Positions 8,604 to 55,519 of a stretch of 64,000 nt of DNA are shown one piece after another (the first letter of the stretch is position 1; the number at the start of each line of letters is the position of its first letter). This DNA is from Hyalangium minutum (GTDB lineage Bacteria; Myxococcota; Myxococcia; Myxococcales; Myxococcaceae). The notes beneath the pieces were generated by a model, which was given only the letters and a program-made list of their open reading frames with translations, was not told the DNA's origin and did not search any database. The stretch lies in NCBI RefSeq assembly GCF_000737315.1, contig NZ_JMCB01000001.1:682001-746000 (forward strand), in the 5' to 3' direction. The translations under genes were made by a program, and so were the position numbers.

Positions 8604-8643
8604 GAGCGCCCCACCCCGCATGCCGGGATGGGGCGCTCTTTTT
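8604..8643 (+). terminator. Intrinsic terminator between convergent clpB and argR
   Basis: GAGCGCCCCA...TGGGGCGCTC stem followed by TTTTT. Confidence 0.75.
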
Positions 8644-9061
8644 ATGCGAGCCGCAGCAGCTGCTCGACCTGCTCCCGCACCTCGAGCAGCAGCTCCGGAT
8701 CCTTCACGGCGATGAAGATCGTGTCATCCCCCGCCACCGTGCCCGCCAGCCCGGGGATGGCCGCGGATCGATCCACCATCAGCGCCACCGCCTGCGCGTA
8801 GCCCGGCGATGTCTTCAGCACGAGCAGGTTCGGCGGCGCCTCGATCACAGTGATCGCCTGCGTGGGCGCGGCCGGCCCCGGCTCCACCCGCTGGTAGCGC
8901 CCGCCCACCTTCTGGATCGACAGCCGCTTCAGGTGCCGCGAGAGCGTGGACTGGCTCGGCGCGTGGCCCTCGGCCGCCAACAACCGCTGGAGCACCGCCT
9001 GATCGGTGATCTCGTTCGCCTCCAGCAACCTCACGATGGCCTCATCCAGCTGAAGATCCAC
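8642..9061 (-). CDS. argR: Arginine repressor (likely GTG start at 9061; ORF extends to 9088)
   Basis: QSTLSRHLKRL winged helix-turn-helix, LKTSPGYAQAVA, AGTVAGDDTIFI arginine-binding motif. GGAGG lies 7 nt upstream of GTG 9061. Confidence 0.92.
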   Translation of the reverse strand: MDLQLDEAIVRLLEANEITDQAVLQRLLAAEGHAPSQSTLSRHLKRLSIQKVGGRYQRVEPGPAAPTQAITVIEAPPNLLVLKTSPGYAQAVALMVDRSAAIPGLAGTVAGDDTIFIAVKDPELLLEVREQVEQLLRLA

Positions 9062-9077
9062 GCCCATCCCTCCACCA

Positions 9078-9101
9078 TGCATTTTCATGCATATGCATGC
9101 A
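9078..9101. promoter_or_regulatory. Two overlapping ARG-box-like palindromes upstream of argR
   Basis: TGCATTTTCATGCA (9078-9091) and TGCATATGCATGCA (9088-9101), both TGCAT-N4-ATGCA, matching the TGMAT-N4-ATKCA core. Confidence 0.65.
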
Positions 9102-9175
9102 AGTACCCTTTGGGGAACCGATCAGAATCCCCGCGAAAAATCGCGACAAAATAGGGTATTGCGCTGCGCGTTGAA

Positions 9176-9231
9176 CTGAATATTATGCGCAACTCCTTCG
9201 GTCCAATGCAGCGTTTATGCACGACTATGCA
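9176..9231. promoter_or_regulatory. Phased array of ARG-box-like sites upstream of argF'
   Basis: ATGC(A/G) half-sites at 9185, 9206 and 9227 (exact 21-bp period); best full box TGCACGACTATGCA at 9218-9231. Confidence 0.55.
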
Positions 9232-9273
9232 AGCCCGCCGGAGGCTCCTCCCGCATCGCGAGGTCCCCACAGC

Positions 9274-10278
9274 ATGAGGCATCTCACCCGCATCCAGGAT
9301 CTGGGCCCCGAAGGCGTCGAGAAGATCCTCGCGCAGGCTGCGGCCTGGAAGCGCCAGGCCCCCGGCCCCATCTTCCAGAACCGCCTGCTGGGGATGGTGT
9401 TCTTCAACCCCTCGCTGCGCACGCGCACCTCGTTCGAGGCGGTGATGCTGCGCTCGGGTGGGCACGCCATCGTGCTGGATGTGGGCAACGGCGTGTGGAA
9501 GCTGGAGGACCGGGTGGGCGCGGTGATGAACGCGGACCGGGCCGAGCACATCAAGGAGGCGGCGCCGGTGCTGTCGCGCTTCGCGGACATGCTCGGGGTG
9601 CGCGCGTTCTCGCAGGGCGGCGGCGACGAGGAGGATGAGCAGGACTCGGTCATCAACTCCTTCCGCAAGCACGTCACCGTGCCGCTGGTGAGCATGGAGT
9701 CCGCGCGCGAGCACCCGTGCCAGGGCCTGGCGGACGCGCTGACGCTCCGGGAGAACTTCGGCTCCACCAAGAAGCTGCCGGTGACGCTCACGTGGGCGCC
9801 CCACATCAAGCCGCTGCCCAAGGCGGTGCCGAACTCGTTCCTGCTGACGGCGGCGGCCGCGGGCTGCGAGGTGCGCGTGGCCCACCCGCCGGGCTTCGAG
9901 CTGCATCCGAAGGTGCGCGCCGAGGCCGAGGCCTACGCAAAGGCCACCGGCGGCAGCGTCACGTACACCCACGATCAAGAGGAGGCGCTGGAGGGCAGCC
10001 GCGCCGTCTATGCCAAGGCCTGGGGCCCGGCCACTCGCGCGGGGCACGCCCCGGGGGATGTGGCGGCGCTGCTGGCGTCGTACTCGGGGTGGATGCCCAC
10101 CCGGCGCTCCATGTCCCTGGCCGCCAAGGACGCCATCTTCCTCCACTGCCTGCCGGTGAGGCGCAACGTCGAAGTGTCCGATGAGGTGTTGGATCACCCC
10201 TCCAGCCGTGTTGTGGATACGGCGGAGAACCGCTTCCACGTCCAGCGCTCCATTCTTCAGTGGATCCTGTCTACCTGA
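9274..10278 (+). CDS. argF': N-acyl-ornithine carbamoyltransferase (ArgF' family), predicted N-succinyl-preferring
   Basis: FFNPSLRTRTSF, WKLE, DRAEH, HPCQ, TLTWAPHIKPLP, HCLPVRRNVE and AENR are ArgF'-type, not classical OTCase. ATG at 9274. Confidence 0.88.
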   Translation: MRHLTRIQDLGPEGVEKILAQAAAWKRQAPGPIFQNRLLGMVFFNPSLRTRTSFEAVMLRSGGHAIVLDVGNGVWKLEDRVGAVMNADRAEHIKEAAPVLSRFADMLGVRAFSQGGGDEEDEQDSVINSFRKHVTVPLVSMESAREHPCQGLADALTLRENFGSTKKLPVTLTWAPHIKPLPKAVPNSFLLTAAAAGCEVRVAHPPGFELHPKVRAEAEAYAKATGGSVTYTHDQEEALEGSRAVYAKAWGPATRAGHAPGDVAALLASYSGWMPTRRSMSLAAKDAIFLHCLPVRRNVEVSDEVLDHPSSRVVDTAENRFHVQRSILQWILST

Positions 10279-10296: not shown

Positions 10297-11139
10297 TTGC
10301 CCTTCTCTCCCGATCCCTATGCCGCGCTTCGCAACGCCGCGCGCTACGTCCGGCAGTTCCGCCGGAAGACCTTCGTCCTCCTGGTCGACGGCCCGATGCT
10401 CGGGGATGCCCGGCTGCGGCGCGCGGTCTGCGAGCAGATCGCCCTGCTGTGGACCTTCTCCATCCAGCCCGTGGTGGTGCACGGCGCCGGCCCCGAGCTG
10501 AACACGCCCTTTGACGCCATGTCCGCCAAGGTCCGCATGGACCTGCTGGCCGACCTGCAGACAGCGGGTGTGCCGTGCGTGGGCCTGAGCGGCGTGGACG
10601 CGGGTCTGCTCAAGGCCCGGCGGCGCAACGGGGAGCCGGGCTCCGAGTCCTCCTGGGAGTCGAACAAGCCGAACAACTACAGCCTCGTGGGCGACATCGA
10701 GTCCGTGGACACGCGGCTGCTCCAGCACCTGCGCACCGGGGACTACGTTCCGGTGGTGGCGCCGCTGGCGGGTGATCCGTCTGGCACCGTGTACAACGCC
10801 AGCGCCGACACCGTGGCCGCCACGCTCGCGGTGGCCCTCGGCGCCGAGAAGCTCTTCTTCCTGCTGCCCACCCCGGGGCTCCTGCGCAAGCCGGAGGATC
10901 CCGCTTCGCTCGTGCCGCAGGCCACGCTCACGGACCTTGCCGCGCTGGAGCAGGAGGGCCAGATGTCCGACAGCACGGTCTCCAAGGTGCACGCCATCCG
11001 GTCCGCGCTGGTGGGCGGGGTGACGAGCGTCCACCTGGTGAGCGGCATGCTCCCGAACGCCATCCTCGAGGAGGTCTTCACCAACGAGGGCAGCGGCACC
11101 ATGGTGCTGCGCGAGGCTCCGGCTCGGGGTAACGGATGA
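10297..11139 (+). CDS. argB: Acetylglutamate kinase homolog with degenerate catalytic motifs (probable pseudokinase)
   Basis: AAK fold by overall similarity (YVRQFRRKTFV, VVVHG, LSGVDAG, VPVVAP, AEKL, EEVFTNEGSGT). K-x-GG is replaced by LVDG, the substrate loop is deleted and GGM is replaced by DST. Confidence 0.8.
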   Translation: MPFSPDPYAALRNAARYVRQFRRKTFVLLVDGPMLGDARLRRAVCEQIALLWTFSIQPVVVHGAGPELNTPFDAMSAKVRMDLLADLQTAGVPCVGLSGVDAGLLKARRRNGEPGSESSWESNKPNNYSLVGDIESVDTRLLQHLRTGDYVPVVAPLAGDPSGTVYNASADTVAATLAVALGAEKLFFLLPTPGLLRKPEDPASLVPQATLTDLAALEQEGQMSDSTVSKVHAIRSALVGGVTSVHLVSGMLPNAILEEVFTNEGSGTMVLREAPARGNG

Positions 11140-12203
11140 CGCCGTCCGCCCTGCTCGAGGCCTTGGTGGCCACCCCGAGCGTCTCCGGACAAGAGGGACG
11201 CATCGCTGATCAGGTGTCCACCTGGGCTGAGGGTTGGGGTGCGCGCGTGCAGCGCCAGGGCCACAACGTGTGGTTCTCGGTGGGCAGCGGGCCTCGGCGC
11301 CTGCTCGTCAACTCGCACCTGGACACGGTCCCCCCGTGCGCCGGGTGGACGCTGGAGCCGCAGGTGCCAGTGTGGCGCGAGGGCAAGCTGTACGGGCTGG
11401 GCAGCAATGACGCGAAGGGCTGTGTCACCGCCATGCTGCTGGCGGCCCGCGGCCTGCTGGAGAACCCGAGCGCCCTGGAGGGCCGGGGCGAGGTGGTGTT
11501 CGCCTTCACCGCCGAGGAGGAGACCGGCGGCAAGGGGCTGGGCACGGTGCTGTCCACGTTCGGGCCTCTGGACGCGGCCGTGGTGGGTGAGCCCACCAGC
11601 CTGAAGCCCTGCACCGCCCAGCGCGGGATGCTCCTGCTGAAGTGCGTGGCGCATGGGCGCTCGGCGCACGTGGCCCACGCGCAGACCGCGGACGCTCAGA
11701 ACGCCATCCACCTGGCCGCCCAGGACATCTCCACCCTGGCCGAGCTGCGCTTCCCGCCGCACCCGCTGCTGGGCGAGGCGCGGGCGCAAGTGACTCAGAT
11801 CCAGGGCGGGCTGGCGCGCAACCAGGTACCGGACCGCTGCGAGTTCTTCGTCGACATCCGCACCACGCCGGGCATGGAGCACTCGGCGGTGGCCACCCAC
11901 CTCGGGGGCGTGCTGCGCAGCGAGGTGGTGGTGCACTCCGCGCGCTACCTGCCGAAGGCCACTGCCTCCACCGAGCCCATCGTCCGCGCGGCCGTGGCGG
12001 CGTCGGGCGCCGGGCCGGTGGGCTCGAGCACCGCGTCGGACTGGGCCTTCCTGGGCAACCTGCCCGCGGTGAAGGTGGGCCCCGGCGACACCCTGCGCTC
12101 GCACAAGCCGGACGAGTACCTCGCCCTCACGGAGCTGGAGGCCGGTGTGGCCTTCTACCAGCAGCTCATCCGCGGCTACTTCCAGGAGGTGGCCCATGGC
12201 TAA
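11136..12203 (+). CDS. argE: M20 family acetylornithine/N-acylcitrulline deacylase
   Basis: NSHLDTV, GSNDAKG, AEEETGG, GEPT and HKPDEY metal ligands intact; position within the arg operon. Confidence 0.85.
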   Translation: MTPSALLEALVATPSVSGQEGRIADQVSTWAEGWGARVQRQGHNVWFSVGSGPRRLLVNSHLDTVPPCAGWTLEPQVPVWREGKLYGLGSNDAKGCVTAMLLAARGLLENPSALEGRGEVVFAFTAEEETGGKGLGTVLSTFGPLDAAVVGEPTSLKPCTAQRGMLLLKCVAHGRSAHVAHAQTADAQNAIHLAAQDISTLAELRFPPHPLLGEARAQVTQIQGGLARNQVPDRCEFFVDIRTTPGMEHSAVATHLGGVLRSEVVVHSARYLPKATASTEPIVRAAVAASGAGPVGSSTASDWAFLGNLPAVKVGPGDTLRSHKPDEYLALTELEAGVAFYQQLIRGYFQEVAHG

Positions 12204-13548
12204 CGACATGCTCTGGGCCAAGGGCCTTCCGCTGGATGCAGCGATCCACCGCTTCACCGTGGGAGACGATCCCTGGGTGGACCTCGCCCTGGCGCCGCAC
12301 GATGCGCTCGGCAGCGCGGCCCATGCGCGCATGCTCGCCCGCGTGGGGCTGCTGCCCGAGGCGGACATGAAGGCCCTCGTGGGTGCGCTGCACGCACTCC
12401 ACGACGAGGCGCGCGCGGGAGCGTTCACCATCCGTCCGGAGCAGGAGGACGGCCACACCGCCCTGGAGGCGGCGCTCGTGGAGCGCGTGGGCGAGCCGGG
12501 CCGGCGCATCCACCTGGGGCGCTCGCGCAATGATCAGGTCCAGCTGGCCCTGCGGCTCATGCTGCGCGAGGAGGTGCTGAAGCTCGGCGCCCAGGCGGTG
12601 GAGCTGGCCGGGGCCTTCCTGGACTTCGCGCAGGCGAACGCCACCGTGCCGATGCCCGGCTACACGCACATGCGGCGCGCCATGCCGAGCACCTTCGGCC
12701 TGTGGGGCGCCGCCTTCGCCGAAGGTCTGCTCGAGGAGCTGGAGGCGCTGCGCGGCCTGTGGGCGCGGCTGGATCGCTGCCCCCTGGGCGCGGCGGCGGG
12801 CTTCGGCGTGCCGCTGCCCATCGATCGCGAGTACGTGGCCAGCCTGCTCGGCTTCTCGCGCGTGCAGCGCAGCCCCATCGACGTGCAGAACAGCCGCGGG
12901 CGGCACGAGACGGCCACGCTCACCTGGGCGTGCTCCGTGGCGGGCGGCCTGGAGAAGTGGCTGTGGGACGTGGCGCTCTTCAGCACCGAGGAGTTCGGCT
13001 TCCTCGCGCTGCCGGATGCCTTCACCACCGGCTCGTCCATCATGCCGCAGAAGAAGAACCCGGACGTGGTGGAGCTGGCCCGCGCCCGCTGCCGGGAGCT
13101 GCGGGGTCTCGCCAAGCAGGTGGAGGAGATTGCTGGAGGCCTGCCCTCGAGCTACCACCGCGACTTCCAGCTGCTGAAGCGCCCCACCCTCACCGCGCTG
13201 GGCTCGTTCCGCGAGCTGCTGGACGTGCTCACCCGCCTGGTGCCCGTGCTGAAGATCCGCGCCGAGGCCGCCGCCCGCGCCAGTGACGACACGCTGTACG
13301 CGGCCCACCACGCCTACGTGCTCGTCGGCAAGGGCCTGCCCTTCCGGGATGCGTACCGCGAGGTGGCCCACCAGATCAGCGACGGGAATTTCCACCCGGA
13401 TCGCGCCGCGCTGACGGCCACCCACCTGGGCGGCGCCGGCAACCTGGCCCTGGAGCAGATCCGAGCCGAGCTGTCCACCAGCCGCTCCTGGCTCACCGAG
13501 ATCCATCGCACGCTCGCCGAATGCGCAGGGCGTGTTTGGCAGTTGTAG
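12196..13548 (+). CDS. argH: Argininosuccinate lyase
   Basis: GRSRNDQV, MPGYTH, GSSIMPQKKNPD signature; ATG 12196 with GGAGG upstream. Confidence 0.95.
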   Translation: MANDMLWAKGLPLDAAIHRFTVGDDPWVDLALAPHDALGSAAHARMLARVGLLPEADMKALVGALHALHDEARAGAFTIRPEQEDGHTALEAALVERVGEPGRRIHLGRSRNDQVQLALRLMLREEVLKLGAQAVELAGAFLDFAQANATVPMPGYTHMRRAMPSTFGLWGAAFAEGLLEELEALRGLWARLDRCPLGAAAGFGVPLPIDREYVASLLGFSRVQRSPIDVQNSRGRHETATLTWACSVAGGLEKWLWDVALFSTEEFGFLALPDAFTTGSSIMPQKKNPDVVELARARCRELRGLAKQVEEIAGGLPSSYHRDFQLLKRPTLTALGSFRELLDVLTRLVPVLKIRAEAAARASDDTLYAAHHAYVLVGKGLPFRDAYREVAHQISDGNFHPDRAALTATHLGGAGNLALEQIRAELSTSRSWLTEIHRTLAECAGRVWQL

Positions 13549-13589: not shown

Positions 13590-14780
13590 ATGAACAAGAA
13601 ACACGTGGTGCTGGCCTTCTCCGGCGGTTTGGACACCTCTTTCTGCGTGGTCTATCTGCGCGAGCAGGGCCACACGGTCACCACCGTCACCGTGGACACC
13701 GGCGGCTTCAGCGCGGACGCGCTGGCGCGCATGCCGGAGCACGCCGCCCGCCTGGGCGCGGTGGCGCACCACACCATCGACGCGCGCTCGCTGCTCTTCG
13801 AGGACTACCTGCGCCACCTGCTCGCCGGCAATGTGCTGCGCGGCCAGGCCTACCCCCTGAGCGTCTCCGCCGAGCGCGTCTGCCAGGCCACCGAAGCGGT
13901 CCGCATGGCCCGCCAGGTGGGCGCTCAGGCCCTGGCCCACGGCTCCACCGGCGCGGGCAATGATCAGGTCCGCTTCGACGTGGCCTTCCGCGCCCTGGCC
14001 CCGGACCTGGAGCTCATCACCCCGATCCGCGAGCTGAGCCTCAGCCGCGCCCAGGAGATGTCCTTCCTGGCCGAGCGCGGCATCCACCTCCCGGCGAAGA
14101 CGGGCGCCTATTCGGTGAACGAGGGCATGTGGGGCACCTCCGTCGGCGGCAAGGAGACGCACGACTCCTGGAGCACCCTGCCCGAGGCCGCCTACCCCGC
14201 GGGCGTCATCCCGGCCGATCTCAAGCCGCGCACGCTGGTGCTCAGCTTCGAGAAGGGCCGCCCGGTGGCCCTCGACGGCAAGGCGATGGATCCCGTGGCG
14301 CTGATCGCCGAGCTGAACGCGGTGGGCCAGCCCTACGGCGTGGGCCGTGGCGTGCACCTGGGTGACACCATCCTGGGCATCAAGGGCCGCGTGGGCTTCG
14401 ACGCTCCCGCGGCCATCATGCTCATCACCGCGCACCGCGAGCTGGAGAAGCTGGTGCTGTCCGGCAAGCAGCTCTTCTGGAAGGAGACGCTGGGCAACCT
14501 CTACGGCTCGCTGCTGCACGAGGGGCACTTCTTCGATCCGCTCGCGCGCGACTTGGAGGGGTTCCTGACGTCCTCGCAGGCGCAGGTGACGGGCGAGGTG
14601 CGGCTGACGCTGCAGCCGCGCGCCCTCGTGGTGGAGGGCGTGCGCTCGAAGCACTCGTTGATGGACGCGAAGGTGGCCAGCTACGGCGAGGCGAACCACT
14701 TGTGGACCGGCGCGGAAGCCGCGGGCTTCGCGAAGGTGTACGGCGTTGCTCAGACCCTGGCCCTGAAGGTGAAGTCATGA
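13590..14780 (+). CDS. argG: Argininosuccinate synthase
   Basis: LAFSGGLDTS PP-loop, HGSTGAGNDQVRF, ILGIKGR; ATG 13590. Confidence 0.95.
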   Translation: MNKKHVVLAFSGGLDTSFCVVYLREQGHTVTTVTVDTGGFSADALARMPEHAARLGAVAHHTIDARSLLFEDYLRHLLAGNVLRGQAYPLSVSAERVCQATEAVRMARQVGAQALAHGSTGAGNDQVRFDVAFRALAPDLELITPIRELSLSRAQEMSFLAERGIHLPAKTGAYSVNEGMWGTSVGGKETHDSWSTLPEAAYPAGVIPADLKPRTLVLSFEKGRPVALDGKAMDPVALIAELNAVGQPYGVGRGVHLGDTILGIKGRVGFDAPAAIMLITAHRELEKLVLSGKQLFWKETLGNLYGSLLHEGHFFDPLARDLEGFLTSSQAQVTGEVRLTLQPRALVVEGVRSKHSLMDAKVASYGEANHLWTGAEAAGFAKVYGVAQTLALKVKS

Positions 14781-15835
14781 AAGTCCACATCGATAAGATT
14801 GGCAGTGTCACCCGGAACCTGCGGCTGGGCCGGACCGTCCACCTCACCTCGGACATCCAGGCGGTGGAGGGCGCGGTGATCGCCGCGCGCATCCACGGGG
14901 AGAAGTCCACCTACAACCAGCTCGAGGACGTCCACGGCCGCATGGTGACGCTGCACGGCGGTGACATCGTCGTCGGCGCGCTGGGCCACCGCAACGCGCT
15001 GCACGGCTACGAGGGCGTGGTGCCGGAGAAGGTGGTGGCGGGCCAGAAGCTCCACATCCTGAACATGGGCGGCGTGATTGGCCAGTGCACCTCGCACAAC
15101 CCGGGGGTGGGCACGCCCTTCGAGGCCGAGGTGCTGGGCCAGGTGCTCATGTTCCCCGAGTTCCAGTCGCGCGCCGGTCAGCCGGCCCACGTCCGGGCCG
15201 GGGCGCTCAAGGGCTCGTCGCAGCCGGTGAAGGTGCCGGTGGTGTACGTGGTGGGCACCTGCATGAACGCGGGCAAGACGTACGCCGCGTGCGCCATCGT
15301 GCGCCAGCTGCATCAGGCCGGCTACCGCGTGGGCGGCGCCAAGCTCACCGGCGTGTCGCTGATGCGCGACACGCTGAGCATGCGGGACTCGGGCGCGGAG
15401 GTGGTGATGGACTTCACCGACGCGGGCACCGTGTGCACCAGCCCGAAGACGGCGGCGCAGGTGTCGCGCGTCATCCTCTCCGAGCTGGCCGCCGCGGACG
15501 TGGACGTCGTCGTCGCGGAGACGGGCGATGGCATCATGGGCGAGTACGGCGTGCAGTCCATCCTCGAGGACTCGGCGCTGCGCGAGCTGGGCGCCGCCTG
15601 GGTGCTGTGCGCGAATGATCCCGTGGGAGCCGCCGGTGGCGTGCGCCACATGAAGGAGACCTACGGCATCCAGGTGGATGTGGTGGCCGGGCCCGCTACG
15701 GACAACCGGGTGGGCATCCGCTTCGTGGAGCGTGAAGTGGGGCTGCCCGCCCACAACGCCCGTGCGGACGCCGCCGGCCTGGGCGGACTCATCGTCGAGA
15801 AGGTTGCACCGCGTATCGCGGGGAGGAAGAGCTGA
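14777..15835 (+). CDS. DUF1611-like P-loop protein, candidate N-acyltransferase replacing ArgA
   Basis: ATG 14777 overlaps the argG stop (ATGA). GTCMNAGKT P-loop-like motif, KLTG, MDFTDAG and ETGDG match the DUF1611 long subfamily as I recall it. Confidence 0.7.
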   Translation: MKVHIDKIGSVTRNLRLGRTVHLTSDIQAVEGAVIAARIHGEKSTYNQLEDVHGRMVTLHGGDIVVGALGHRNALHGYEGVVPEKVVAGQKLHILNMGGVIGQCTSHNPGVGTPFEAEVLGQVLMFPEFQSRAGQPAHVRAGALKGSSQPVKVPVVYVVGTCMNAGKTYAACAIVRQLHQAGYRVGGAKLTGVSLMRDTLSMRDSGAEVVMDFTDAGTVCTSPKTAAQVSRVILSELAAADVDVVVAETGDGIMGEYGVQSILEDSALRELGAAWVLCANDPVGAAGGVRHMKETYGIQVDVVAGPATDNRVGIRFVEREVGLPAHNARADAAGLGGLIVEKVAPRIAGRKS

Positions 15836-16905
15836 TGAACAAGGTGCACGCATACATCCTGGGTGCCGCCGGTTTCCCCGGTGGCGACCTGCTGCGGCTG
15901 CTGTCGGGACACCCGGCGGTGGCGGCGGTGCGCGCGGTGTCCCAGCCCCACGGGGACATGCCCTTCTACAAGGTGCACCCGCACCTGCGCGGGCTCGTCG
16001 AGGGCAAGTTCGACGCGGCGCCGGACTGGCGCTGGCTCACGGACTCTCCGCAGCCGGTGGTCTTCTCCGCGCTGGAGGAGGAGGAGCTCGCCCGGCAGCT
16101 GCCCGCCCTGGAGAAGCAGTGGGCGGAGCTGGGGCTCTCGGAGCGGCTCATCCTGGTGGACCTGTCCCCGGACTTCCGGCTGGACCACCCCGGGCGCTAC
16201 GCCGCCACGCATGGCCGCCCTCACCCGTCTCCGGATCTACTGGAGAAGTTCGTGTACGGCCTGCCCGAGTGGCGCCGCGACAAGCTGAAGGGCGCCAAGC
16301 GCATCGCCAACCCGGGGTGCTTCGCCACGGCCGTGCAGCTCGCGCTGCTGCCGGTGGCGTCCACGCCGGGGCTGGGGATGATCGCCGCCTCGGCGGTGAC
16401 GGGCTCCTCGGGCTCGGGCGCGCTGCCGGGCGAGGTGACGCACCACCCCACCCGCGCGCATGACTTCCGCGCCTACAAGCCGCTGGAGCACCCGCAGGAG
16501 GCGGAGATCGACGTGATGCTCGTGGCGCACAAGGCCGTGCGCCACCGGCTCACCTTCGTGCCGCACTCGGCGCCGCTGGTGCGCGGCATCTTCGCCACCA
16601 TCCAGTTCGAGTGGCCGGAGAACGGTGGCGGTGTGAGCACGAACTCGCTGACCGAGGTGTACCGCCGCTACTACGCCACCTCGCCCATGGTGCGCGTGGT
16701 GGAGGGCACGCCGCGGCTGGCCTCGGTGGTGGGCAGCAACTTCGCTGATATCTCCGTGGCCACGCGTGGGCGCACGGTGGCCGTCATGGTGGCGCTCGAC
16801 AACCTGGTGAAGGGACTGGCCGGACAAGCCGTGCAGTCCCTCAACGTGGCGCTCGGCCTGCCCGAGGACACCGCCCTGCGCCAGGCCGCGTGCTTCCCCT
16901 GCTGA
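15835..16905 (+). CDS. argC: N-acetyl-gamma-glutamyl-phosphate reductase homolog with degenerate nucleotide-binding motifs
   Basis: IANPGCF catalytic Cys, DLSxDFRL, TGSSGSG and LDNLVKG present. Rossmann loop reads GAAGFPGGD, ALPHG reads ALEEE, H-x-H reads HPQ. Confidence 0.82.
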   Translation: MNKVHAYILGAAGFPGGDLLRLLSGHPAVAAVRAVSQPHGDMPFYKVHPHLRGLVEGKFDAAPDWRWLTDSPQPVVFSALEEEELARQLPALEKQWAELGLSERLILVDLSPDFRLDHPGRYAATHGRPHPSPDLLEKFVYGLPEWRRDKLKGAKRIANPGCFATAVQLALLPVASTPGLGMIAASAVTGSSGSGALPGEVTHHPTRAHDFRAYKPLEHPQEAEIDVMLVAHKAVRHRLTFVPHSAPLVRGIFATIQFEWPENGGGVSTNSLTEVYRRYYATSPMVRVVEGTPRLASVVGSNFADISVATRGRTVAVMVALDNLVKGLAGQAVQSLNVALGLPEDTALRQAACFPC

Positions 16906-17628: not shown

Positions 17629-18969
17629 ATGAAGCACATGTCTACCGGCTGGGAGCATCATTTCTGCCTGCCTCCGGGGACACGAGTGCAGGACTGGCTC
17701 GTGGAGAGTTGCCACGGCCACGGTGCCTTTGGCGTCGTCTATCGCGCCGTCCGTATCGGCCACGAGTCCGATGGTCCCGTGGCCCTCAAGATGGCCCTCT
17801 TCCCCTGGGATCCCCGCTTCATGAGGGAGGTGGCGCTGCTGTCGCTCGTCCACCACCCCAGCGTGCCGCGCCTGCTCGGCCATGGCTTCTGGCGCCGTCC
17901 CCAAGGCACCTTCTTCCCCTTCATCGTCATGCAATGGGTGGAGGGCACGCCCCTCTATGAATGGGCGCGTCAGCACCGTCCCTCCCCTGCTCAGGTGGCA
18001 CTGCTGCTCTCTCAGTTGGCCCGCGCGCTCGAGGCCACCCACGACTGCAGAGCGGTCCACCGCGACGTCAAAGGGGACAATGTCGTGGTGAGGCACTCGG
18101 ACGGCCGCGCCATGCTCATGGACTTCGGCGCCGGTCACTACCAGTCCGCCGCACGGCTGACCTTCCAACCGCTGCCTCCTGGCACTCCTCCCTATCAATC
18201 TCCCCAGGCGGCGCAGTTCGAGCGGAACGCAGAGAACCACCCCGGCGCCCGGTACCTCGCCGGGCCCGCAGACGATGTGTTCGCCCTGGGTGTCACCGCC
18301 CATCGGCTCCTGACCGGTGACTATCCCTTCTCACTCGAGCCTCCTTTGGATGGGGTGCCATCAGCGCTCCGAGCGCTGATCGTGCGCATGCTCTCGCTGT
18401 CTCCCGAGGCGCGCGGCCCGGCGGGCGAACTGGCCGAAGCACTCGAAGCCTTCGCAGCGCAGGAGAAGATGCCACTTCCGCCGGAGAGTTCCACCCGCTC
18501 CCGTTCACGGCATCAACGCCGCGTGTGGAGGGCCGGAGGTGTGGGGGCTTTCGTGAGCTTGCTGCTGGCGCTGGGGGCCTGGCAATTCACGCACTCGCGC
18601 TCCCCTCAGGCCTCGCTTACCACCCAAGCCGTGGACACGGACCGGCCGGACGCGGACACCACCGGTGTGGCGGAAGCGGCTTCGAAGACAACCGAGGCCT
18701 CCGCTCCACCGCCTCGCCAGCCAGAGGCGATCCACCAGGACCCGAACGCCGAGCCATTGCCGGGACAGTTACGGCCCACCGAGCGAGGCCAATGCCCGGG
18801 GGGAAAGCAGGTCCCCATCAACGGAGGATGCTGGGTGGAGGTCCCCTCGAAAGATGCCGCAGAGTGCGAGGCCAATGGGTTGGTCTTCATCCAGGGCCGC
18901 TGCTACGCCCGGGCGTTTGGCCACCGCCGCAAAAATCCGCCCACCTCCGCTCCTGCGGACTCCCGGTAG
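17629..18969 (+). CDS. Ser/Thr protein kinase, myxobacterial type with a TM helix and a Cys-rich C-terminal domain
   Basis: GHGAFGVVY, VALK, HRDVKGDN, DFG and PGTPPY motifs; TM segment VGAFVSLLLALGAW; RGQCPGG...GGCW...C...GRCY tail. Confidence 0.88.
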   Translation: MKHMSTGWEHHFCLPPGTRVQDWLVESCHGHGAFGVVYRAVRIGHESDGPVALKMALFPWDPRFMREVALLSLVHHPSVPRLLGHGFWRRPQGTFFPFIVMQWVEGTPLYEWARQHRPSPAQVALLLSQLARALEATHDCRAVHRDVKGDNVVVRHSDGRAMLMDFGAGHYQSAARLTFQPLPPGTPPYQSPQAAQFERNAENHPGARYLAGPADDVFALGVTAHRLLTGDYPFSLEPPLDGVPSALRALIVRMLSLSPEARGPAGELAEALEAFAAQEKMPLPPESSTRSRSRHQRRVWRAGGVGAFVSLLLALGAWQFTHSRSPQASLTTQAVDTDRPDADTTGVAEAASKTTEASAPPPRQPEAIHQDPNAEPLPGQLRPTERGQCPGGKQVPINGGCWVEVPSKDAAECEANGLVFIQGRCYARAFGHRRKNPPTSAPADSR

Positions 18970-26653: not shown

Positions 26654-27868
26654 TCAGCGGTACTTCAGCCAGGCCGCGAGCAGCTCGCCCACCATCTTGT
26701 TCACGCTGACGCCCGTGCGCCGCGCGATGGCCTCCAGCGCTTCGATCTGCTCTCCGGGCAGCGTCAGGCTGATCAACCGCTCGGAGGCGCTGCGGCCCTC
26801 CCTCGACGGCGGACCCTCCCTCACGGGATTGGAGGACATGGGCGTCACCTCGTCCTCCAGCGCCAGCACCTGGTCCGAGCTCGTCGTCTGCTTCAGCCGG
26901 CCCTGCTCCTCGTTCAGCTCGTCGTGGAACAGCTGCCGCAGGAAGTTGGAGAGGTGCTGCGGCGAGGGGGTGAAGTCGTACGTGCTGAGGAACGCGTCAA
27001 TCGCCGCACGCATCTCCCCTGCCGTCTGGTAGCGGCGCTCCCGGTCCTTCTCGAGCGCCTTCATGAGGATTTCCTCGACGGGCTCGGGGATGTCCGCCTT
27101 GAAGTAGGACGGGGCGTAGATCTTCCCGTCGGTGATGCTGCGCATCACCGCCACCTCGGACTCGCCGGTGAAGAGCTTGAAGCCGGTGAGCCACTCGTAG
27201 AGCACCACGCCCACGGAGAAGATGTCGCTGCGGCAGTCCAGCGGCTTGCCAAAGCACTGCTCGGGGCTCATGTAGCTCAGCTTGCCCTTCAGCTCGCCCG
27301 AGCGCGTCTGCTCCACTTGGTTGGCGGCCTTGGCGATGCCGAAGTCCAAGAGCTTCACCGTGCCGTCGAAGGACACGAAGACGTTCTCGGGCGTCACGTC
27401 CCGGTGGACGATGTTCAGCGGGTTGCCGTACAGGTCCACCTTCTTGTGTGCGTAGTGCAGCCCCGCGCACACGTCCGAGGCAATGCGCAGCGCATACACC
27501 AGCGGGAACGGAATCCCCAGCTGCTCGGCCTTGGGCATCACTCGCCGCATGTCCCGGCCGAAGATGTACTCCATGGCGATGAAGTAGCTCTCGCCAATCT
27601 TCCCCAAGTCATGGATCTGCACGATGTTGGGGTGGTTGAGCTGCGCTGCCAGCCGCGCCTCGTTCAGAAACATCTTCACGAACGTGGTGTGCTTGGACAG
27701 GTGCGGGCGGATGCGCTTGATGACGACGGGCCGCTCCAGGCCCTCGCCCTCCGTCTGCTGCGCCAGGAAAATCTCCGCCATGCCGCCCACGGCGATGCGG
27801 TCCACGAGCCGGTACTTGCCGAAGCGGACGGTGTCTCGCGAGACGTTGAGGGACGGGGAAGTGGACAT
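26654..27868 (-). CDS. pkn14: Cytoplasmic Ser/Thr kinase with a C-terminal ribbon-helix-helix-like domain; probable Pkn14 ortholog
   Basis: GGMAEIF, VIK, HRDVTPEN, DFG and YMSPE; no TM segment. The Pkn14 identity is inferred from size, lack of TM and proximity to mrpC, not from an alignment. Confidence 0.65.
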   Translation of the reverse strand: MSTSPSLNVSRDTVRFGKYRLVDRIAVGGMAEIFLAQQTEGEGLERPVVIKRIRPHLSKHTTFVKMFLNEARLAAQLNHPNIVQIHDLGKIGESYFIAMEYIFGRDMRRVMPKAEQLGIPFPLVYALRIASDVCAGLHYAHKKVDLYGNPLNIVHRDVTPENVFVSFDGTVKLLDFGIAKAANQVEQTRSGELKGKLSYMSPEQCFGKPLDCRSDIFSVGVVLYEWLTGFKLFTGESEVAVMRSITDGKIYAPSYFKADIPEPVEEILMKALEKDRERRYQTAGEMRAAIDAFLSTYDFTPSPQHLSNFLRQLFHDELNEEQGRLKQTTSSDQVLALEDEVTPMSSNPVREGPPSREGRSASERLISLTLPGEQIEALEAIARRTGVSVNKMVGELLAAWLKYR

Positions 27869-41178: not shown

Positions 41179-44070
41179 TCACGGAGACCCCGGAGCACCC
41201 GATAAAGGTGCACCCGGAGCGGATCCTCGAGCAGTGCTACAGGCCTGTGGAATGGCATCGCAGAGCGTCTTGAGGGACTTGGCGAGCTCGGCGTCCTCGG
41301 GGTGAGCAGACACCATCCGCTGGCCCAGGTCCACGGCCTCGGAGAGCCCGGTGACGGGGGTCCAGGCGGTGCGCGAGGCCCAGGCCTTGGCCGCCACCAC
41401 GCGCAGCCAGGCGGAGATGAAGCGCGGATCATCCTTGCCGCGCTCCAGAGCGGGCGCGAGCACGGACTCGGCCAGCGTCACGTCCTTCTGGGCCAAGGTG
41501 GTGTGGGCCAGGGCCACGCGGGCCTCCAGGCTGTCCGGGTCCAGCGAGTGCCAGAGCGCGGCAGCCCCGCGGATCAGCGGATCATTGATGGCGTGGTTGT
41601 GGTCCAGGTTGCGGTACAGGTCCGCGGCCTGCTTCGCGGTGGGCGGGTGCTCCTGGAGGTAGCGGTGGATCCACAGCCGGGAGCCTCCATCGGGGCCCCG
41701 GCGCTCGTCGTGGACGCGCGTCTCCTGGTTCTGGAGGAAGAAGGCCACCGGCGCGGCGTACTCGAGCAGGTTGCGGTCGTCCGTATTGATGGGGCCGATA
41801 CCGGCGAACTCGCGCTGGCCCTCGTCGCTGTGGACCTGCTTGGCCAGCAGGCCGAAGACGTCATGGATGTCGGTGCGGCCCAGGTCCTCGCGCACCTCGG
41901 GGATGGCGAGGCGCTCGGCGACCTTCTGAGCGTCGAACTCCAGCGGCTTGCGGCTGGCCACGAGGATGAGGTCCGTGGGCCCCAGCCACGTGGTGGCGTA
42001 CGGGAACGTGTCGCGCAGGGTGCGCATGACCAGCTTGATGATCTCTTCGCTGCTCTCGTAGGTGTGGATCCACTGGACGAAGATGCCGTCCTCGGTGAGG
42101 TGCTGGTCGGCGATGCGGAAGAAGTCCTGCGAGAAGAGGCCGGAGACGCCCGCCACCCAGGGGTTGGACGGCTCGCTGATGATGAGCTCGTACTTGCGAG
42201 GGGCCAGCGCCATGAACGTCTTCGCGTCGTCGATGTGAACGTGCGTGCGCGGATCATCCACGCCGTTGCGGTTCACGGCCTTGAAGAGGCGGGCGGCCTC
42301 CACCACGGCGGGGGAGATCTCCACCATGTCCAGGTGCTTGACGGGGTGCGCGAGCACCGAGCCGGCGGTGACGCCCGAGCCCGCGCCGACCAGGAGCACG
42401 TTCTCCGGGGGGCGCGGGTGCAGCAGCATGCCCAGGTGGCCAGCGATGATCTGCGTCTCCATGTCCAGGCCGGTGGAGGCGTCCACCTTGCCGTTGAGCT
42501 TGAGGTAGCGGTGTCCGTTCTTCAGCTCGCCCACGAGCACGGTGGCGAAGGTGTCGTCCTGGTAGAAGAGGGACTGGGAGTTCTGCTCGAAGGTGTTGAC
42601 GGCGGCGGCGTAGCTGGCGGGCGGCGTCTCCAGCACGCGGAACGAGGCGATGCCGGACAGGGTGACGGCCCAGCCGCTCATCGGCAGCAGGAACAGCACG
42701 CCACAGGCGGCTCCGAGCCCCAGCGGCCAGAAGGCCTTGACGGGTTGGGCGGGGCGTCCAGGCACAGCGGCGAAGGCCACGCCCGCGGCAATGAGGTTGC
42801 CCACGAGCCCAGCGATGAAGTTGCCCTCCATGCCCCACCACGGCATCAGCACGAGCCCGCCCAGGGCGGCGCCGGTGATGGTGCCTAGCGTGTTCCACAG
42901 GTAGACACCCCCGAGCTGCCGGCCCACCTCGGCCACCTTGGCGGTGGCCACACGCGCCGCAGCGGGGAAGGCCGCGCCCATGAAGAAGGTGGGGATGATG
43001 AGCACGAGGCAGCAGAACGCGAACGTGAGCAGCTGGTAGTACGACCAGGAGTCCAGCGACCGGTTCATCAAGAACTGCGCCTTGCGGAACAGGTACGGCA
43101 GCCGGACATAGAGCGGCAACGCCACGCACACGCTGGCCACCAGCGCCACCTGGAGCCACGCGAACAGCCGCAGCAGATCTCCCCTGCCCTTGCGCGTCAT
43201 CAGCCAGAAGCTGCCCAGGCCGATGCCGAGGATGAACGCCGTGAGGATGAGGGTGAACGCGTAGGTGGAGGCGCCCAGGACCAGGGACAGCAGGCGGATC
43301 CACGTCACCTGATAGAGCATGGACGTAAAGCCGGACAGCGCCACGCCCAGCAGGGCCGCTCGAACCGCCGCGTGGGGGTAGGACAGCTCATCCCCGCTCT
43401 CGGCCGCCGCACCTTCGGCTGGAGCCTGCGAGCCCAGCGCGGGCGGGTGCTTCCGAGCCAGCGCAATGGCCCCGAGCGCCAGGAGGATGTTGAGGCTGGC
43501 AGCCAGCTTCGCGGACAGCGACAGGCCCAGCGCCGGCACCAGACTCACGCCGGCCAGGAACACGCCCAGGGCGGCCCCCAGGCTGTTGATGGCGTACAGG
43601 CGGGCCAGCTCGCGCCGGACATGGGCCAGGGTGGCGGAGAAGTGACGCACCAGGGCAGGCAGCGTGCCCCCCATCAACATGGTGGGCACCACCAGGGACA
43701 GCGCGGCCAGGCCCAGCTTGGGCACCACGCGCACCCCATCCGGCACCTTCACCGCCACGGCGAGATAGGCCGCGCTGAGCACCTCCAGCACCGAGGGGAA
43801 CAGGAGCGCATAGAGACCCACCCCCAGCTCCAGCAGGCCGTACATGGCCAGGGGGCTCTTCACCCGGTCGGCTGTTCGCCCGAAGACATATGCCCCCAGC
43901 GCCAGCCCGCCCATGAAGGTGGCCAGCACCACGGCGTGGGCTTGTCCGCTATTCCCGAGGACGTTGGCCAGGTACTTCGACCAGACGAGCTCGTAGACGA
44001 GGGCCGTGGCCCCGGACAGGAAGAGGAAGCTTGAAACCAGATTCTTCGGGAAACCCGTGGCACCGTGCAT
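41179..44070 (-). CDS. Fused MFS-like/spermidine synthase protein with a TPR-like tail
   Basis: SGATALVYELVW repeat modules, LNGKVDAS, VGAGSGVTAG SAM loop, VEIS, DDAK, IISEPSNPW. Confidence 0.85.
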   Translation of the reverse strand: MHGATGFPKNLVSSFLFLSGATALVYELVWSKYLANVLGNSGQAHAVVLATFMGGLALGAYVFGRTADRVKSPLAMYGLLELGVGLYALLFPSVLEVLSAAYLAVAVKVPDGVRVVPKLGLAALSLVVPTMLMGGTLPALVRHFSATLAHVRRELARLYAINSLGAALGVFLAGVSLVPALGLSLSAKLAASLNILLALGAIALARKHPPALGSQAPAEGAAAESGDELSYPHAAVRAALLGVALSGFTSMLYQVTWIRLLSLVLGASTYAFTLILTAFILGIGLGSFWLMTRKGRGDLLRLFAWLQVALVASVCVALPLYVRLPYLFRKAQFLMNRSLDSWSYYQLLTFAFCCLVLIIPTFFMGAAFPAAARVATAKVAEVGRQLGGVYLWNTLGTITGAALGGLVLMPWWGMEGNFIAGLVGNLIAAGVAFAAVPGRPAQPVKAFWPLGLGAACGVLFLLPMSGWAVTLSGIASFRVLETPPASYAAAVNTFEQNSQSLFYQDDTFATVLVGELKNGHRYLKLNGKVDASTGLDMETQIIAGHLGMLLHPRPPENVLLVGAGSGVTAGSVLAHPVKHLDMVEISPAVVEAARLFKAVNRNGVDDPRTHVHIDDAKTFMALAPRKYELIISEPSNPWVAGVSGLFSQDFFRIADQHLTEDGIFVQWIHTYESSEEIIKLVMRTLRDTFPYATTWLGPTDLILVASRKPLEFDAQKVAERLAIPEVREDLGRTDIHDVFGLLAKQVHSDEGQREFAGIGPINTDDRNLLEYAAPVAFFLQNQETRVHDERRGPDGGSRLWIHRYLQEHPPTAKQAADLYRNLDHNHAINDPLIRGAAALWHSLDPDSLEARVALAHTTLAQKDVTLAESVLAPALERGKDDPRFISAWLRVVAAKAWASRTAWTPVTGLSEAVDLGQRMVSAHPEDAELAKSLKTLCDAIPQACSTARGSAPGAPLSGAPGSP

Positions 44071-52774: not shown

Positions 52775-55519
52775 ATGGCCACCCCCGCCCCCACCGCCCA
52801 GAACTGGGTGCTGCGTCTGTTCTTCGTCTCGGGCCTCTCCGGGATCCTCTTCGAGGTCCTCTGGACGCGGATCTTCACGTACCTGCTCGGGGGCACCACG
52901 CACAGCGTCACCGCCGTCATCACGGCGTTCATGCTGGGGCTCGGGCTGGGCTCGTACCTGTTGGGCCGAGTGGCGGACCGTTCCACCCGGCCGCTGCGCA
53001 TCTACGGGCTGCTGGAGCTGGGCGTCGCGTTCAGCGGGCTCGTGGCGTTCTATGCCTTCCACCACATCGAGTCGCTCTACTCGGTCCTCTATGCCTGGGC
53101 GCCGCAGGCGACGATCAAGTGGCTCGTCTTCCTGATTGCGTTCGTCTTCGTCTCGTTCTCCGCCACCCTCATTGGGGGCACCTTGCCCGTGCTCGCCCGC
53201 TACGTGGTGAACCGGGATGAAGGCCTGAAGGCCGCGCTGGGCCAGCTCTACTCCATCAACACACTGGGAGCGGCGGCGGGCTCGGTGCTGATGATCGGCC
53301 TGGTGTGGGTGCTGGGCTACGAGACGGGCTACCACCTCGCGCTTGCGCTCAACGTGGTCACGGGCGTGGCGGCCCTGCTCCTGTCCCGCCGTGAGAACGC
53401 AGCGCCTGTCTCCAGCAGTGAGGCCCCGTCCGCCTCCCCTCCTCCCACCGCTGAACCTCGGGAGACCCTCGATGGCCGCATTCTCCTGCCTGCCTTCGCC
53501 CTCTCCGGCTTCTGCGCGCTGGCGTACGAGGTCATCTGGTTCCGGCTGCTCGACTTCTTGCTGTTGGGCCGGCTGACGACCTTCGCCTGCGTCCTCTCCG
53601 TGTACCTGCTGGGGATCAGCCTGGGCAGCGTCGCGTTCAGCCGCTGGAGCCCCCGAGGCCTGAGCGATCTCAAGCTGTTCGTCGTCTTCGAGGCCCTGCT
53701 CGGGCTCCTGGGACTCCTCAGCCTGCCGGTGCTGTCGGCGGTCAGCGGCTGGGGGCACCGGCCGTTCACCATCGCCGTGGGCTTCCTGCTGCTCTTCGCG
53801 ATGACGCTGCTGCTGGGAGGCCTCTTCCCGCTGGCGGGCAAGCTGTACGCGGGGCCGATGCGGCTGCTCGGGCGGACGGTGGGCAACATCTACTCGGCCA
53901 ACACGGCGGGCTCGGTGCTGGGCTCGTTCCTGACGGGCTTCGTCCTCTTCCCCACCATCGGCACCTCGGCCGCGCTGCTGCTCATCGCGGCGCTGAACCT
54001 GGGCATTGCCGCCACCCTGGCGGGCGTCTCGCTGCGGCCGCTGAACACCCGCTGGGTGGGCACAGTCGCGGCACTCGCGGCGGTGGGGCTGGGGGGCTGG
54101 TTCAGCGCCGACTGGCTCACGCGGTACTACGAGCACGTCAGCCTCCGCCCAGGCTTCCGGGTGATCGCCGAGAGCGAGAGCAGCCTGCAGCCCGTGCTGG
54201 TAGCTGAGAACGGCCAGGGCGATCGGGTCCTCCTGGGCGGTCCGTTCCAGTCCGGGGAGACGGTGCCCGCGCGGAGGCAGACCCAGAAGCTCCAGGCGCA
54301 CCTGCCAATGCTCGTGCACCCGAACCCGCAGCGGGTGCTGGAGATTGGCTACGGCGTGGGCGAGCTCCCACGGACCTTGCTGCTGTACCAGCCGGAGCTG
54401 CTCCAGCTCGTCGAGCTGGACGAGCACATGATCCCGGTAGCCGAGGAGTACTTCGGGGCGCTCAACGAGCACGCGAGCCGCAAGCCCAACGTGCGCGTGG
54501 ACGTGATGGACGGGCGGCACTTCCTGAAGATGAGCGAGGAGCAGTTCGACGTGATCATGTCGGACTCGATGATCCTCGCCAGTGAGGGCAGCCTGCGGCT
54601 CTACACGGAGGAGCACTTCCGCGAGGCGCGCCGGCACCTGCGTCCCGGGGGCGTGGCGCTGGTGTGGCTGCCGCTCAACGCGGGCATCAGCAAGGCCATG
54701 GTCATCCTGAAGACCTTCCAGAAGGTCTTCCCACAGAGCCTGCTGTGGCTGCCGCTGGGGCTCAACACGCAGGAGGCCTTCATCGTCGGCTTCCGGGACG
54801 AGGCCTCCATCGACTGGACGGCTTGGCGCGAGAAGTACGAGCGGGTGGCCCGGCAGGACTTGCAGGCCTTCGGCTGGGACTCGCCGGGGCTGTTCTTCGC
54901 GAGCTTCCGAGCGGGGCCTGAACAACTGTCCGAGATCGCCTCGCGCGTGCCGATGATCAACCGGGACATGAACCCGGTGCTGGACTTCTTGCCGCAGGAG
55001 ACTCCGGCGGAGATCGATGCGGCGGTTCGCCAGCTCATCGCCTACCCGCCGGGCGCGATCTTCGCGCACCTGAAGGACGGTCCCACGCCGGATGAGTCGC
55101 TGGGGGCCCTTCGAAGCGAGGTCGAGCGCATCCACGAGGCGGACCAGCGCTTCTTCCAGGGAGTCGAAGCGCTGGAGCGGTTCGGCGCGCGGCCTCCGTC
55201 GGAGGTGCTGGCGAACGCGGCCACGCTGACCGAGGGCTTCCGTCAGGCCCTGGAGCTGTACCCCCGCCACCACGCCTCGGCGGTGTGGATGGCACAGGTG
55301 CTGGGGTTAGCGGCGAAGGTGCAGCCTCCGATGGAGCCCGAGAAGGTTCGTGGGCTGCTGGAGGAGGCATTGCGCTACAGTCCGTCGGATCTCGCGGTGG
55401 CCGAGGCGCTCGCGCGCCTGGCGCTGCAGCGAGGTGACAAGGAAGAGGCTCACAAGTACATCGAGCGGGTCCGGGCGCTGGCGCCCTACTCCCGGCTCGC
55501 CGCCACCGAGACGCCATGA
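52775..55519 (+). CDS. Fused MFS-like/spermidine synthase protein with a TPR-like tail
   Basis: Two membrane repeat modules (SGILFEVLW, SGFCALAYEVIW), IGYGVG SAM loop, VELD, MDGRHFL, helical C-terminus. Confidence 0.82.
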   Translation: MATPAPTAQNWVLRLFFVSGLSGILFEVLWTRIFTYLLGGTTHSVTAVITAFMLGLGLGSYLLGRVADRSTRPLRIYGLLELGVAFSGLVAFYAFHHIESLYSVLYAWAPQATIKWLVFLIAFVFVSFSATLIGGTLPVLARYVVNRDEGLKAALGQLYSINTLGAAAGSVLMIGLVWVLGYETGYHLALALNVVTGVAALLLSRRENAAPVSSSEAPSASPPPTAEPRETLDGRILLPAFALSGFCALAYEVIWFRLLDFLLLGRLTTFACVLSVYLLGISLGSVAFSRWSPRGLSDLKLFVVFEALLGLLGLLSLPVLSAVSGWGHRPFTIAVGFLLLFAMTLLLGGLFPLAGKLYAGPMRLLGRTVGNIYSANTAGSVLGSFLTGFVLFPTIGTSAALLLIAALNLGIAATLAGVSLRPLNTRWVGTVAALAAVGLGGWFSADWLTRYYEHVSLRPGFRVIAESESSLQPVLVAENGQGDRVLLGGPFQSGETVPARRQTQKLQAHLPMLVHPNPQRVLEIGYGVGELPRTLLLYQPELLQLVELDEHMIPVAEEYFGALNEHASRKPNVRVDVMDGRHFLKMSEEQFDVIMSDSMILASEGSLRLYTEEHFREARRHLRPGGVALVWLPLNAGISKAMVILKTFQKVFPQSLLWLPLGLNTQEAFIVGFRDEASIDWTAWREKYERVARQDLQAFGWDSPGLFFASFRAGPEQLSEIASRVPMINRDMNPVLDFLPQETPAEIDAAVRQLIAYPPGAIFAHLKDGPTPDESLGALRSEVERIHEADQRFFQGVEALERFGARPPSEVLANAATLTEGFRQALELYPRHHASAVWMAQVLGLAAKVQPPMEPEKVRGLLEEALRYSPSDLAVAEALARLALQRGDKEEAHKYIERVRALAPYSRLAATETP

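Follow-up and report, generated by a model that had tools for sequence, protein, structure and literature searches.

Which enzyme carries out the first step of arginine biosynthesis in an operon that encodes the later enzymes of the pathway but no recognizable glutamate N-acyltransferase? The question is raised by a 64,000-nucleotide stretch of the Hyalangium minutum genome (assembly GCF_000737315.1, contig NZ_JMCB01000001.1, positions 682,001 to 746,000 of the forward strand; hereafter the window), in which an open reading frame at 14777-15835 (+) gives the uninterrupted translation of a 352-residue P-loop protein, here called X, between argG and argC. An assignment for the first arginine enzyme is lacking in whole clades, i.e. 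Myxococcaceae, Holophagaceae/Geothrix and Steroidobacter-like Gammaproteobacteria. Based on the placement of X between argG and argC, the presence in these operons of every step but the first, the invariance of the protein, its natural fusion with a kinase-like domain, the specificity residue of the linked ArgF' and a published prediction, we propose that X catalyses the first committed step of arginine biosynthesis as an N-acyl-L-glutamate synthase of neither the GNAT nor the ArgJ type, its product most likely being N-succinyl-L-glutamate, an assignment that we regard as probable. A first-pass annotation of the same DNA had suggested a non-orthologous ArgA acting on glutamate or ornithine; the idea of a replacement gains from the operon context conserved in at least three phyla, from the other steps being encoded and from the kinase fusion, whereas acylation of ornithine is unnecessary in the pathway.

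X is encoded by a genuine gene and is not a chance reading frame of a GC-rich genome, since its GC content at third codon positions (0.935) is similar to that of the adjoining genes, more than 6000 homologs were found, and the ratio of nonsynonymous to synonymous substitution rates (dN/dS) is 0.17-0.23. Identity of 65-70% is retained across phyla, and a library of representatives at 50% identity holds 1764 family members, 267 of them at E <1e-30. The start codon (ATG, 14777-14779) overlaps the argG stop (TGA, 14778-14780; junction …TCATGA…) and the stop codon (TGA, 15833-15835) overlaps the argC start, the ATG of which begins at 15835 (junction …GCTGATG…); both overlaps had been pointed out in the first-pass annotation and are present in the sequence, as are the four motifs listed there, GTCMNAGKT (aa 160-168), KLTG (189-192), DFTDAG (212-217) and ETGDG (248-252). 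These four motifs show no or almost no variation among 26 diverse homologs and 85 species loci, the C-terminal domain motifs also including K189, AETGDG and CANDPVG, and 124 of the 352 residues are invariant across the 85 species.

A scan of species-representative genomes yielded 261 relatives, and gene order was read in the best 80. All of these with enough flanking sequence share the arrangement (argD) argF' argB (argE) argH argG X argC with a divergent argR. The argG-X-argC placement holds in about 85 species loci from Myxococcota, Holophagaceae/Geothrix, gammaproteobacterial metagenome-assembled genomes (MAGs) and a Chthoniobacterales MAG, individual loci with this arrangement being those of a Holophaga MAG, the Chthoniobacterales MAG, Myxococcus, Hyalangium and Stigmatella. 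A 36%-identical relative (L094) resides in a differently ordered operon, argR-argG-argH-X-argC. argE is absent from the gammaproteobacterial operons and argD from the myxobacterial ones; the operons encode ArgB, ArgC, (ArgD), ArgF', (ArgE), ArgG and ArgH, and step 1, the N-acylation of glutamate, is never among them, nor is a GNAT or ArgJ gene. Operons without an argE-like M20 gene between argB and argH were seen in Gammaproteobacteria and 'Natronospirales' (loci L063, L067-L069, L077, L084-L086 and L088). In the window, the locus is composed as follows.

8642-9088 (-): argR, arginine repressor (Pfam Arg_repressor and Arg_repressor_C), divergent from the operon, its position constant in all related loci
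9089-9273 (no strand): argR/argF' intergenic control region with AT-rich repeats of the TGCATATGCATGCA type, conserved by alignment
9274-10278 (+): argF', N-acylornithine carbamoyltransferase (NCBIfam NF003384, 440 bits against a cut-off of 288)
10297-11139 (+): argB*, degenerate N-acylglutamate kinase homolog (predicted pseudo-kinase) of 280 aa (TIGR00761, 126 bits against a cut-off of 151.3)
11136-12203 (+): argE-like M20 deacylase, probably an N-acylcitrulline deacylase (Pfam Peptidase_M20 and M20_dimer; under every NCBIfam equivalog cut-off)
12196-13548 (+): argH, argininosuccinate lyase, start MANDML checked (TIGR00838, 291.6 bits against a cut-off of 279.5)
13590-14780 (+): argG, argininosuccinate synthase (TIGR00032, 314.7 bits against a cut-off of 268.2)
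14777-15166 (+): X, N-terminal all-beta domain, aa 1-130 (AF2 models, pLDDT 89 and 88)
15233-15835 (+): X, C-terminal BioD-like (SIMIBI) P-loop domain, aa 153-352 (Foldseek, phmmer and a sub-cut-off match to Pfam DUF1611)
15835-16905 (+): argC (TIGR01850, 285.5 bits against a cut-off of 233.6)

No GNAT domain or ArgJ fold is matched by Pfam or NCBIfam on X or on the other operon genes, and a Pfam sweep of the 37 other likely genes of the window returned no GNAT, ArgJ, second AA_kinase or class-III (ArgD-type) aminotransferase. The statement at first pass that the operon lacks a GNAT gene and argJ hence extends to the entire window. A scan for promoters and terminators detected no sigma-70-like promoter or intrinsic terminator within the operon.

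That a similar assignment might already exist had been anticipated, and one does. In a GapMind 2026 preprint, ACG33_RS14135 of Steroidobacter denitrificans is predicted, without experiment, to be an N-succinylglutamate synthase (bioRxiv 10.1101/2024.10.14.618325). According to the same source, homologs of this protein lie almost invariably in arg operons and never alongside ArgA homologs, Steroidobacter, which has no known ArgA, can grow in minimal medium, the host lacks argE, the protein matches the DgcN structure 7XRJ weakly by Foldseek, and 90% of the ArgF' proteins linked to the family carry A, P, S or V at position 92 (bioRxiv 10.1101/2024.10.14.618325). X resembles this family in being a hypothetical protein of arg operons with argB, C, D, F', G, H and R, in its very distant relationship to DgcN, in a linked ArgF' with a residue other than Glu at position 92 and in gammaproteobacterial operons without argE. 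The all-beta N-terminal domain, the BioD-like signature, the kinase fusion and the dead ArgB of Hyalangium and Stigmatella do not figure in the preprint's account. Beyond that account, the two-domain build of X speaks against a plain DUF1611 protein and brings ligation with ATP into play as an alternative, a naturally occurring fused form of X with a kinase-like partner comes to light, and the conserved dead ArgB leaves the kinase step unexplained in Hyalangium/Stigmatella, providing a tractable example of pseudoenzyme evolution. Should the assignment be true, a P-loop protein in the job of a GNAT or ArgJ enzyme would be a clean non-homologous replacement, and it would correct the 'hypothetical' or 'DUF1611' labels on thousands of genes.

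The identity of the acyl group is suggested by ArgF'. The protein of the window carries Ala at the position equivalent to E92 (ADRAEHI, with the core DRAEHI), and its best PDB match is 3l02, an E92A chain reading GDTAEHI, where the 3m5c chain reads GDTEEHI. Among the linked ArgF' proteins the equivalent residue is Ala in 59 of 70, Pro in 9 and Gln in 2. The enzyme becomes specific for N-succinylornithine once E92 is exchanged for A, P, S or V (Shi et al. 2007, cited after bioRxiv 10.1101/2024.10.14.618325). Together, the Ala residue and the specificity switch suggest that the pathway intermediates are likely succinylated, in agreement with the succinyl idea that the first-pass annotation had drawn from this residue. 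A succinylated pathway and a non-Glu specificity residue in ArgF' are shared with the Bacteroidetes system of the N-succinylglutamate synthase BT3761 and the N-succinylornithine transcarbamylase (SOTCase; 2fg6). However, the Bacteroidetes synthase is a GNAT protein, and the ArgF' of the window is nearer the Xanthomonas N-acetylornithine transcarbamylase lineage (244 bits) than the Bacteroides SOTCase (211 bits).

In an AF2 model (mean predicted local distance difference test score, pLDDT, 89; predicted template modelling score, pTM, 0.87), X is composed of two domains. The N-terminal domain (aa 1-130), which reaches pLDDT 88 when modelled alone, is all-beta and holds many Arg, Lys, His and Asp residues that are invariant across the 85 species loci; these would suit the binding of dicarboxylates, making it a candidate substrate-binding domain. 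The C-terminal domain (aa ~153-352) adopts a SIMIBI-class P-loop fold, the best PDB matches of which in Foldseek are the dethiobiotin synthetase (BioD) structures 1dae and 1dts (E 8.5e-7, i.e. about 1e-6), followed by signal recognition particle (SRP) GTPases, HypB and MeaB at E about 1e-5. phmmer aligns aa 157-209 of X to BioD 6-58, placing GTCMNAGKT…K189 opposite GTDTEVGKT…K37. The likeness to BioD hence comprises the best structural match and the GT-x4-GKT spacing with the following Lys (K37 in BioD, K189 in X), both invariant in the family, whereas X has an additional N-terminal domain of 130 aa, resides in an arginine instead of a biotin context and reaches only 16.5 bits with the BioD equivalog TIGR00347, for which the cut-off is 83.3. 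MobB and BioD profiles likewise match marginally.

We envisage the following sequence of events. The C-terminal BioD-like P-loop domain would bind the nucleotide part of the acyl donor, which may be succinyl-CoA, by analogy to DgcN, or ATP, and the Arg/Lys-rich all-beta N-terminal domain would bind the dicarboxylate substrates, allowing acylation of the alpha-amine of glutamate. The product would then proceed via ArgB, ArgC, ArgD, a succinylornithine-type ArgF', the M20 deacylase, ArgG and ArgH. In Hyalangium and Stigmatella, ArgB* would be non-catalytic, its most likely role being to sense arginine for the synthase or to act as its scaffold, like the inactive kinase domain of classical ArgA, and the kinase activity would be supplied by a gene outside the window.

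The proposed pathway step is that of classical ArgA (N-acetylglutamate synthase, NAGS) and of the bifunctional Xanthomonas NAGS-K, and an inactive kinase domain combined with a catalytic module, the layout of the classical enzyme, is recreated by the pair of dead ArgB and synthase and by a natural fusion protein. In contrast to ArgA, the catalytic part would be formed by a P-loop protein and not by a GNAT domain, and in the pair the two components are separate genes, four apart. The fusion protein, P0197 (626 aa), joins an X-like protein, 38% identical to that of the window, to an amino-acid-kinase domain and was found in two independent metagenome samples (L008 10001-11881 and L009 6077-7957), where it stands alone and adjoins an arginase gene. 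Its kinase motifs are partly degenerate (VLKIAD, HGGG, LRVT, AVASD and GGMRQK), and the protein appears to mirror the arrangement of amino-acid-kinase and catalytic domains of classical ArgA. A second apparent fusion, P0192, which would include ArgC, was rejected, as long Arg/Ser/Ala-rich junk stretches make it look like a frameshifted gene call.

The ArgB-like protein of the window retains the amino-acid-kinase fold (Pfam AA_kinase, E 8.8e-25), and its best PDB matches, N-terminal segment included, are the arginine-sensitive N-acetylglutamate kinases 2jj4, 2rd5, 2buf and 2bty. Of the canonical motifs, VVKLGG reads VLLVDG, HGGG reads HGAG, NTNAD reads NASAD and GGMxPK reads DSTVSK, and a deletion of about 25 residues removes the AGRRVT substrate lid. 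Degenerate ArgB occurs in 10 loci (the window, Hyalangium rubrum, H. versicolor, Stigmatella sp. and related MAGs), and a database search with the dead protein retrieved 55 clusters at 90% identity, of 270-284 aa or fragments, with identical lesions in all. Its dN/dS is 0.25-0.38, as compared to 0.13-0.26 for the adjoining genes and 0.24-0.36 for intact Myxococcaceae ArgB; values comparable to those of the intact enzyme indicate that the protein is maintained and not decaying. Judged from its sequence, ArgB* is catalytically dead, having lost all kinase motifs, is kept by purifying selection and is confined to the Hyalangium/Stigmatella clade. Still conserved are the N-terminal helix and, at the C-terminal end, the segment FTNEGSGTM, which form the arginine site in hexameric arginine-sensitive kinases, and by analogy to classical ArgA a regulatory or scaffolding role is most plausible. 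A literature search found no account of this ArgB pseudo-kinase, and a catalytically dead, clade-confined and conserved ArgB* is apparently new to the literature. Motif-less homologs (P0444-P0486) are mostly annotated 'acetylglutamate kinase', some Hyalangium copies at NCBI being named 'amino acid kinase family protein'; for the dead clade, the former functional name is probably wrong.

The pairing of X with a dead ArgB, highlighted at first pass as the most likely novelty, is accordingly real and apparently undescribed. However, it is lineage-specific and no property of the system, as about 62 of the 72 linked argB genes keep all motifs (Myxococcus, Corallococcus, Geothrix, Holophagaceae and Gammaproteobacteria). 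No source of the kinase activity emerged from the searches made. Run at E 1e-2 on the window and on nine related loci (+-10 kb), tblastn returned the known gene only and neither a second AA_kinase nor an ArgD, and the best 120 matches (at least 402 bits) to intact Myxococcus ArgB, all from Myxococcaceae, Holophagaceae and Gammaproteobacteria, contain no intact paralog from the dead-ArgB clade, a search that reaches close paralogs and leaves room for a distant one elsewhere. Only three conserved positions (E30V, F234L and A334G), none of them in a motif, set X of the dead-ArgB clade apart from every other X, and with so few clade-specific changes there is no sign that it has taken over the kinase function.

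Several observations weigh against X as an N-acylglutamate synthase. The function is a prediction for all members of the family, and X is assigned to the family of ACG33_RS14135 (A0A127FCT3) by five matching described features. The search for a classical ArgA or ArgJ, which found none, was confined to the 64-kb window and +-10 kb of the related loci. Moreover, the likeness to DgcN is marginal. The first-pass label DUF1611 is weak, as the PF07755 hidden Markov model reaches 23.1 bits, short of the gathering score of 25, over no more than the 46 residues around the P-loop (aa 145-190, profile positions 4-49 of 201); no Pfam match exists in aa 1-144, and hence no DUF1611-type N-terminal domain. 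With the N-terminal domain as query, Foldseek finds nothing in the PDB at E <1, DgcN included, 7XRJ is absent among the best 50 Foldseek PDB matches, and a family profile of 26 members searched against all PDB sequences recovers only BioD, at E 0.03, and no DgcN or DUF1611 chain. Finally, the C-terminal domain resembles an intact BioD-type NTP-using enzyme, and a kinase, a ligase or an NTPase accessory factor is therefore conceivable in place of a CoA-dependent transferase. We conclude that X is not a bona fide DUF1611 member, that its relationship to DgcN is at most that of the P-loop superfamily and that its architecture is its own. DgcN itself (PDB 7XRJ) is documented as an acetyl-CoA-dependent D-glutamate N-acetyltransferase (EC 2.3.1.312), in line with the first-pass annotation. 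The two proteins would share the alpha-amine of glutamate as target, and their P-loop domains are related (PF07755, aa 145-190), whereas X scores below the Pfam cut-off, has an all-beta N-terminal domain without a PDB match in place of the DUF1611_N type, and DgcN serves catabolism, with the D-isomer as its substrate.

X might also reach the same product by ATP-dependent ligation of the BioD type, in which succinate or acetate would be converted to an acyl phosphate that is attacked by the amine of glutamate, without a CoA thioester. The nearest solved folds, BioD and other SIMIBI NTPases with no acyltransferase among them, the phmmer pairing of the P-loops with the following lysines, and the invariant E248 (AETGDG) and N280 (CANDPVG), which presumably correspond to the Walker-B Glu and the adenine-binding 'AND' of BioD, are all compatible with such a route. 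Nevertheless, the sole characterized distant relative, DgcN, depends on acetyl-CoA, and CoA too has an ADP moiety fit for a P-loop, and we consider ligation unlikely. Somewhat more doubtful still is a composite in which this BioD-like ligation would be combined with an ArgB* pseudoenzyme acting as the arginine-sensing subunit of the P-loop synthase, i.e. a convergent split ArgA that is fused in P0197, and with an unrelated enzyme for the N-acylglutamate kinase step.

Acyl or carbamoyl phosphates are established products of P-loop enzymes of the BioD type. X could accordingly be imagined as an N-acylglutamate kinase analog, or as a bifunctional synthase-kinase, that passes the acyl phosphate on to ArgC, and its gene is always directly upstream of argC, often with overlapping codons. 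Such an activity would explain the death of ArgB in the Hyalangium/Stigmatella lineage, in which no second AA_kinase was detected in the regions searched. Yet the kinase is not generally missing, given the large majority of intact linked ArgB, step 1 would still be unaccounted for, and the few clade-specific changes in X spare its motifs, rendering this explanation very improbable. The matches to HypB, MeaB and the SRP GTPases, together with the metal requirement of the operon's M20 enzyme, might instead point to a non-enzymatic NTPase accessory, either a metallochaperone of the M20 protein similar to HypB, UreG or MeaB, or a GTPase that assembles or regulates an arginine metabolon. The chaperone idea fails in those operons with the X gene that have no argE, i.e. 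those of the Gammaproteobacteria; neither a G3E-type Cys/His metal motif nor an NKxD guanine motif is found in X, step 1 would again be left missing, and an anticorrelation with ArgA has been reported (bioRxiv 10.1101/2024.10.14.618325). We consider this explanation very improbable as well. As both the kinase analog and the accessory factor leave the first step without an enzyme and most operons keep an intact ArgB, the N-acyl-L-glutamate synthase is favored over either.

Relatives of X outside arginine operons, with ~34% identity or less, are represented by P0190 and P0255. The latter (L092 2030-3061) is 34% identical, lacks the P-loop Cys and CANDPVG and lies divergently beside two genes for CoA-transferase subunits, away from arg genes. 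These neighbours are a single hint that the wider superfamily possibly handles acyl-CoA, too thin to be used as evidence here.

Regarding regulation, the AT-rich repeats in 9089-9273 (TGCATATGCATGCA; TTATGCACGACTATGCA) between argR and argF' are conserved among Hyalangium, Stigmatella and Myxococcus and probably represent ARG boxes through which ArgR would control its own gene and the operon.

Elsewhere in the window, three large paralogs with spermidine/spermine-synthase-like methyltransferase domains are present at 41179-44070 (-), 52775-55519 (+) and 55516-57765 (+), two of which also possess weak membrane regions similar to the major facilitator superfamily and TPR tails; to tie them to arginine or polyamine metabolism would be no more than a guess. 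Two eukaryotic-like Ser/Thr protein kinases near the operon, at 17629-18969 (+) and 26654-27868 (-), are ordinary for myxobacteria, and one of them is, together with a pseudouridine synthase, syntenic in related myxobacterial loci.

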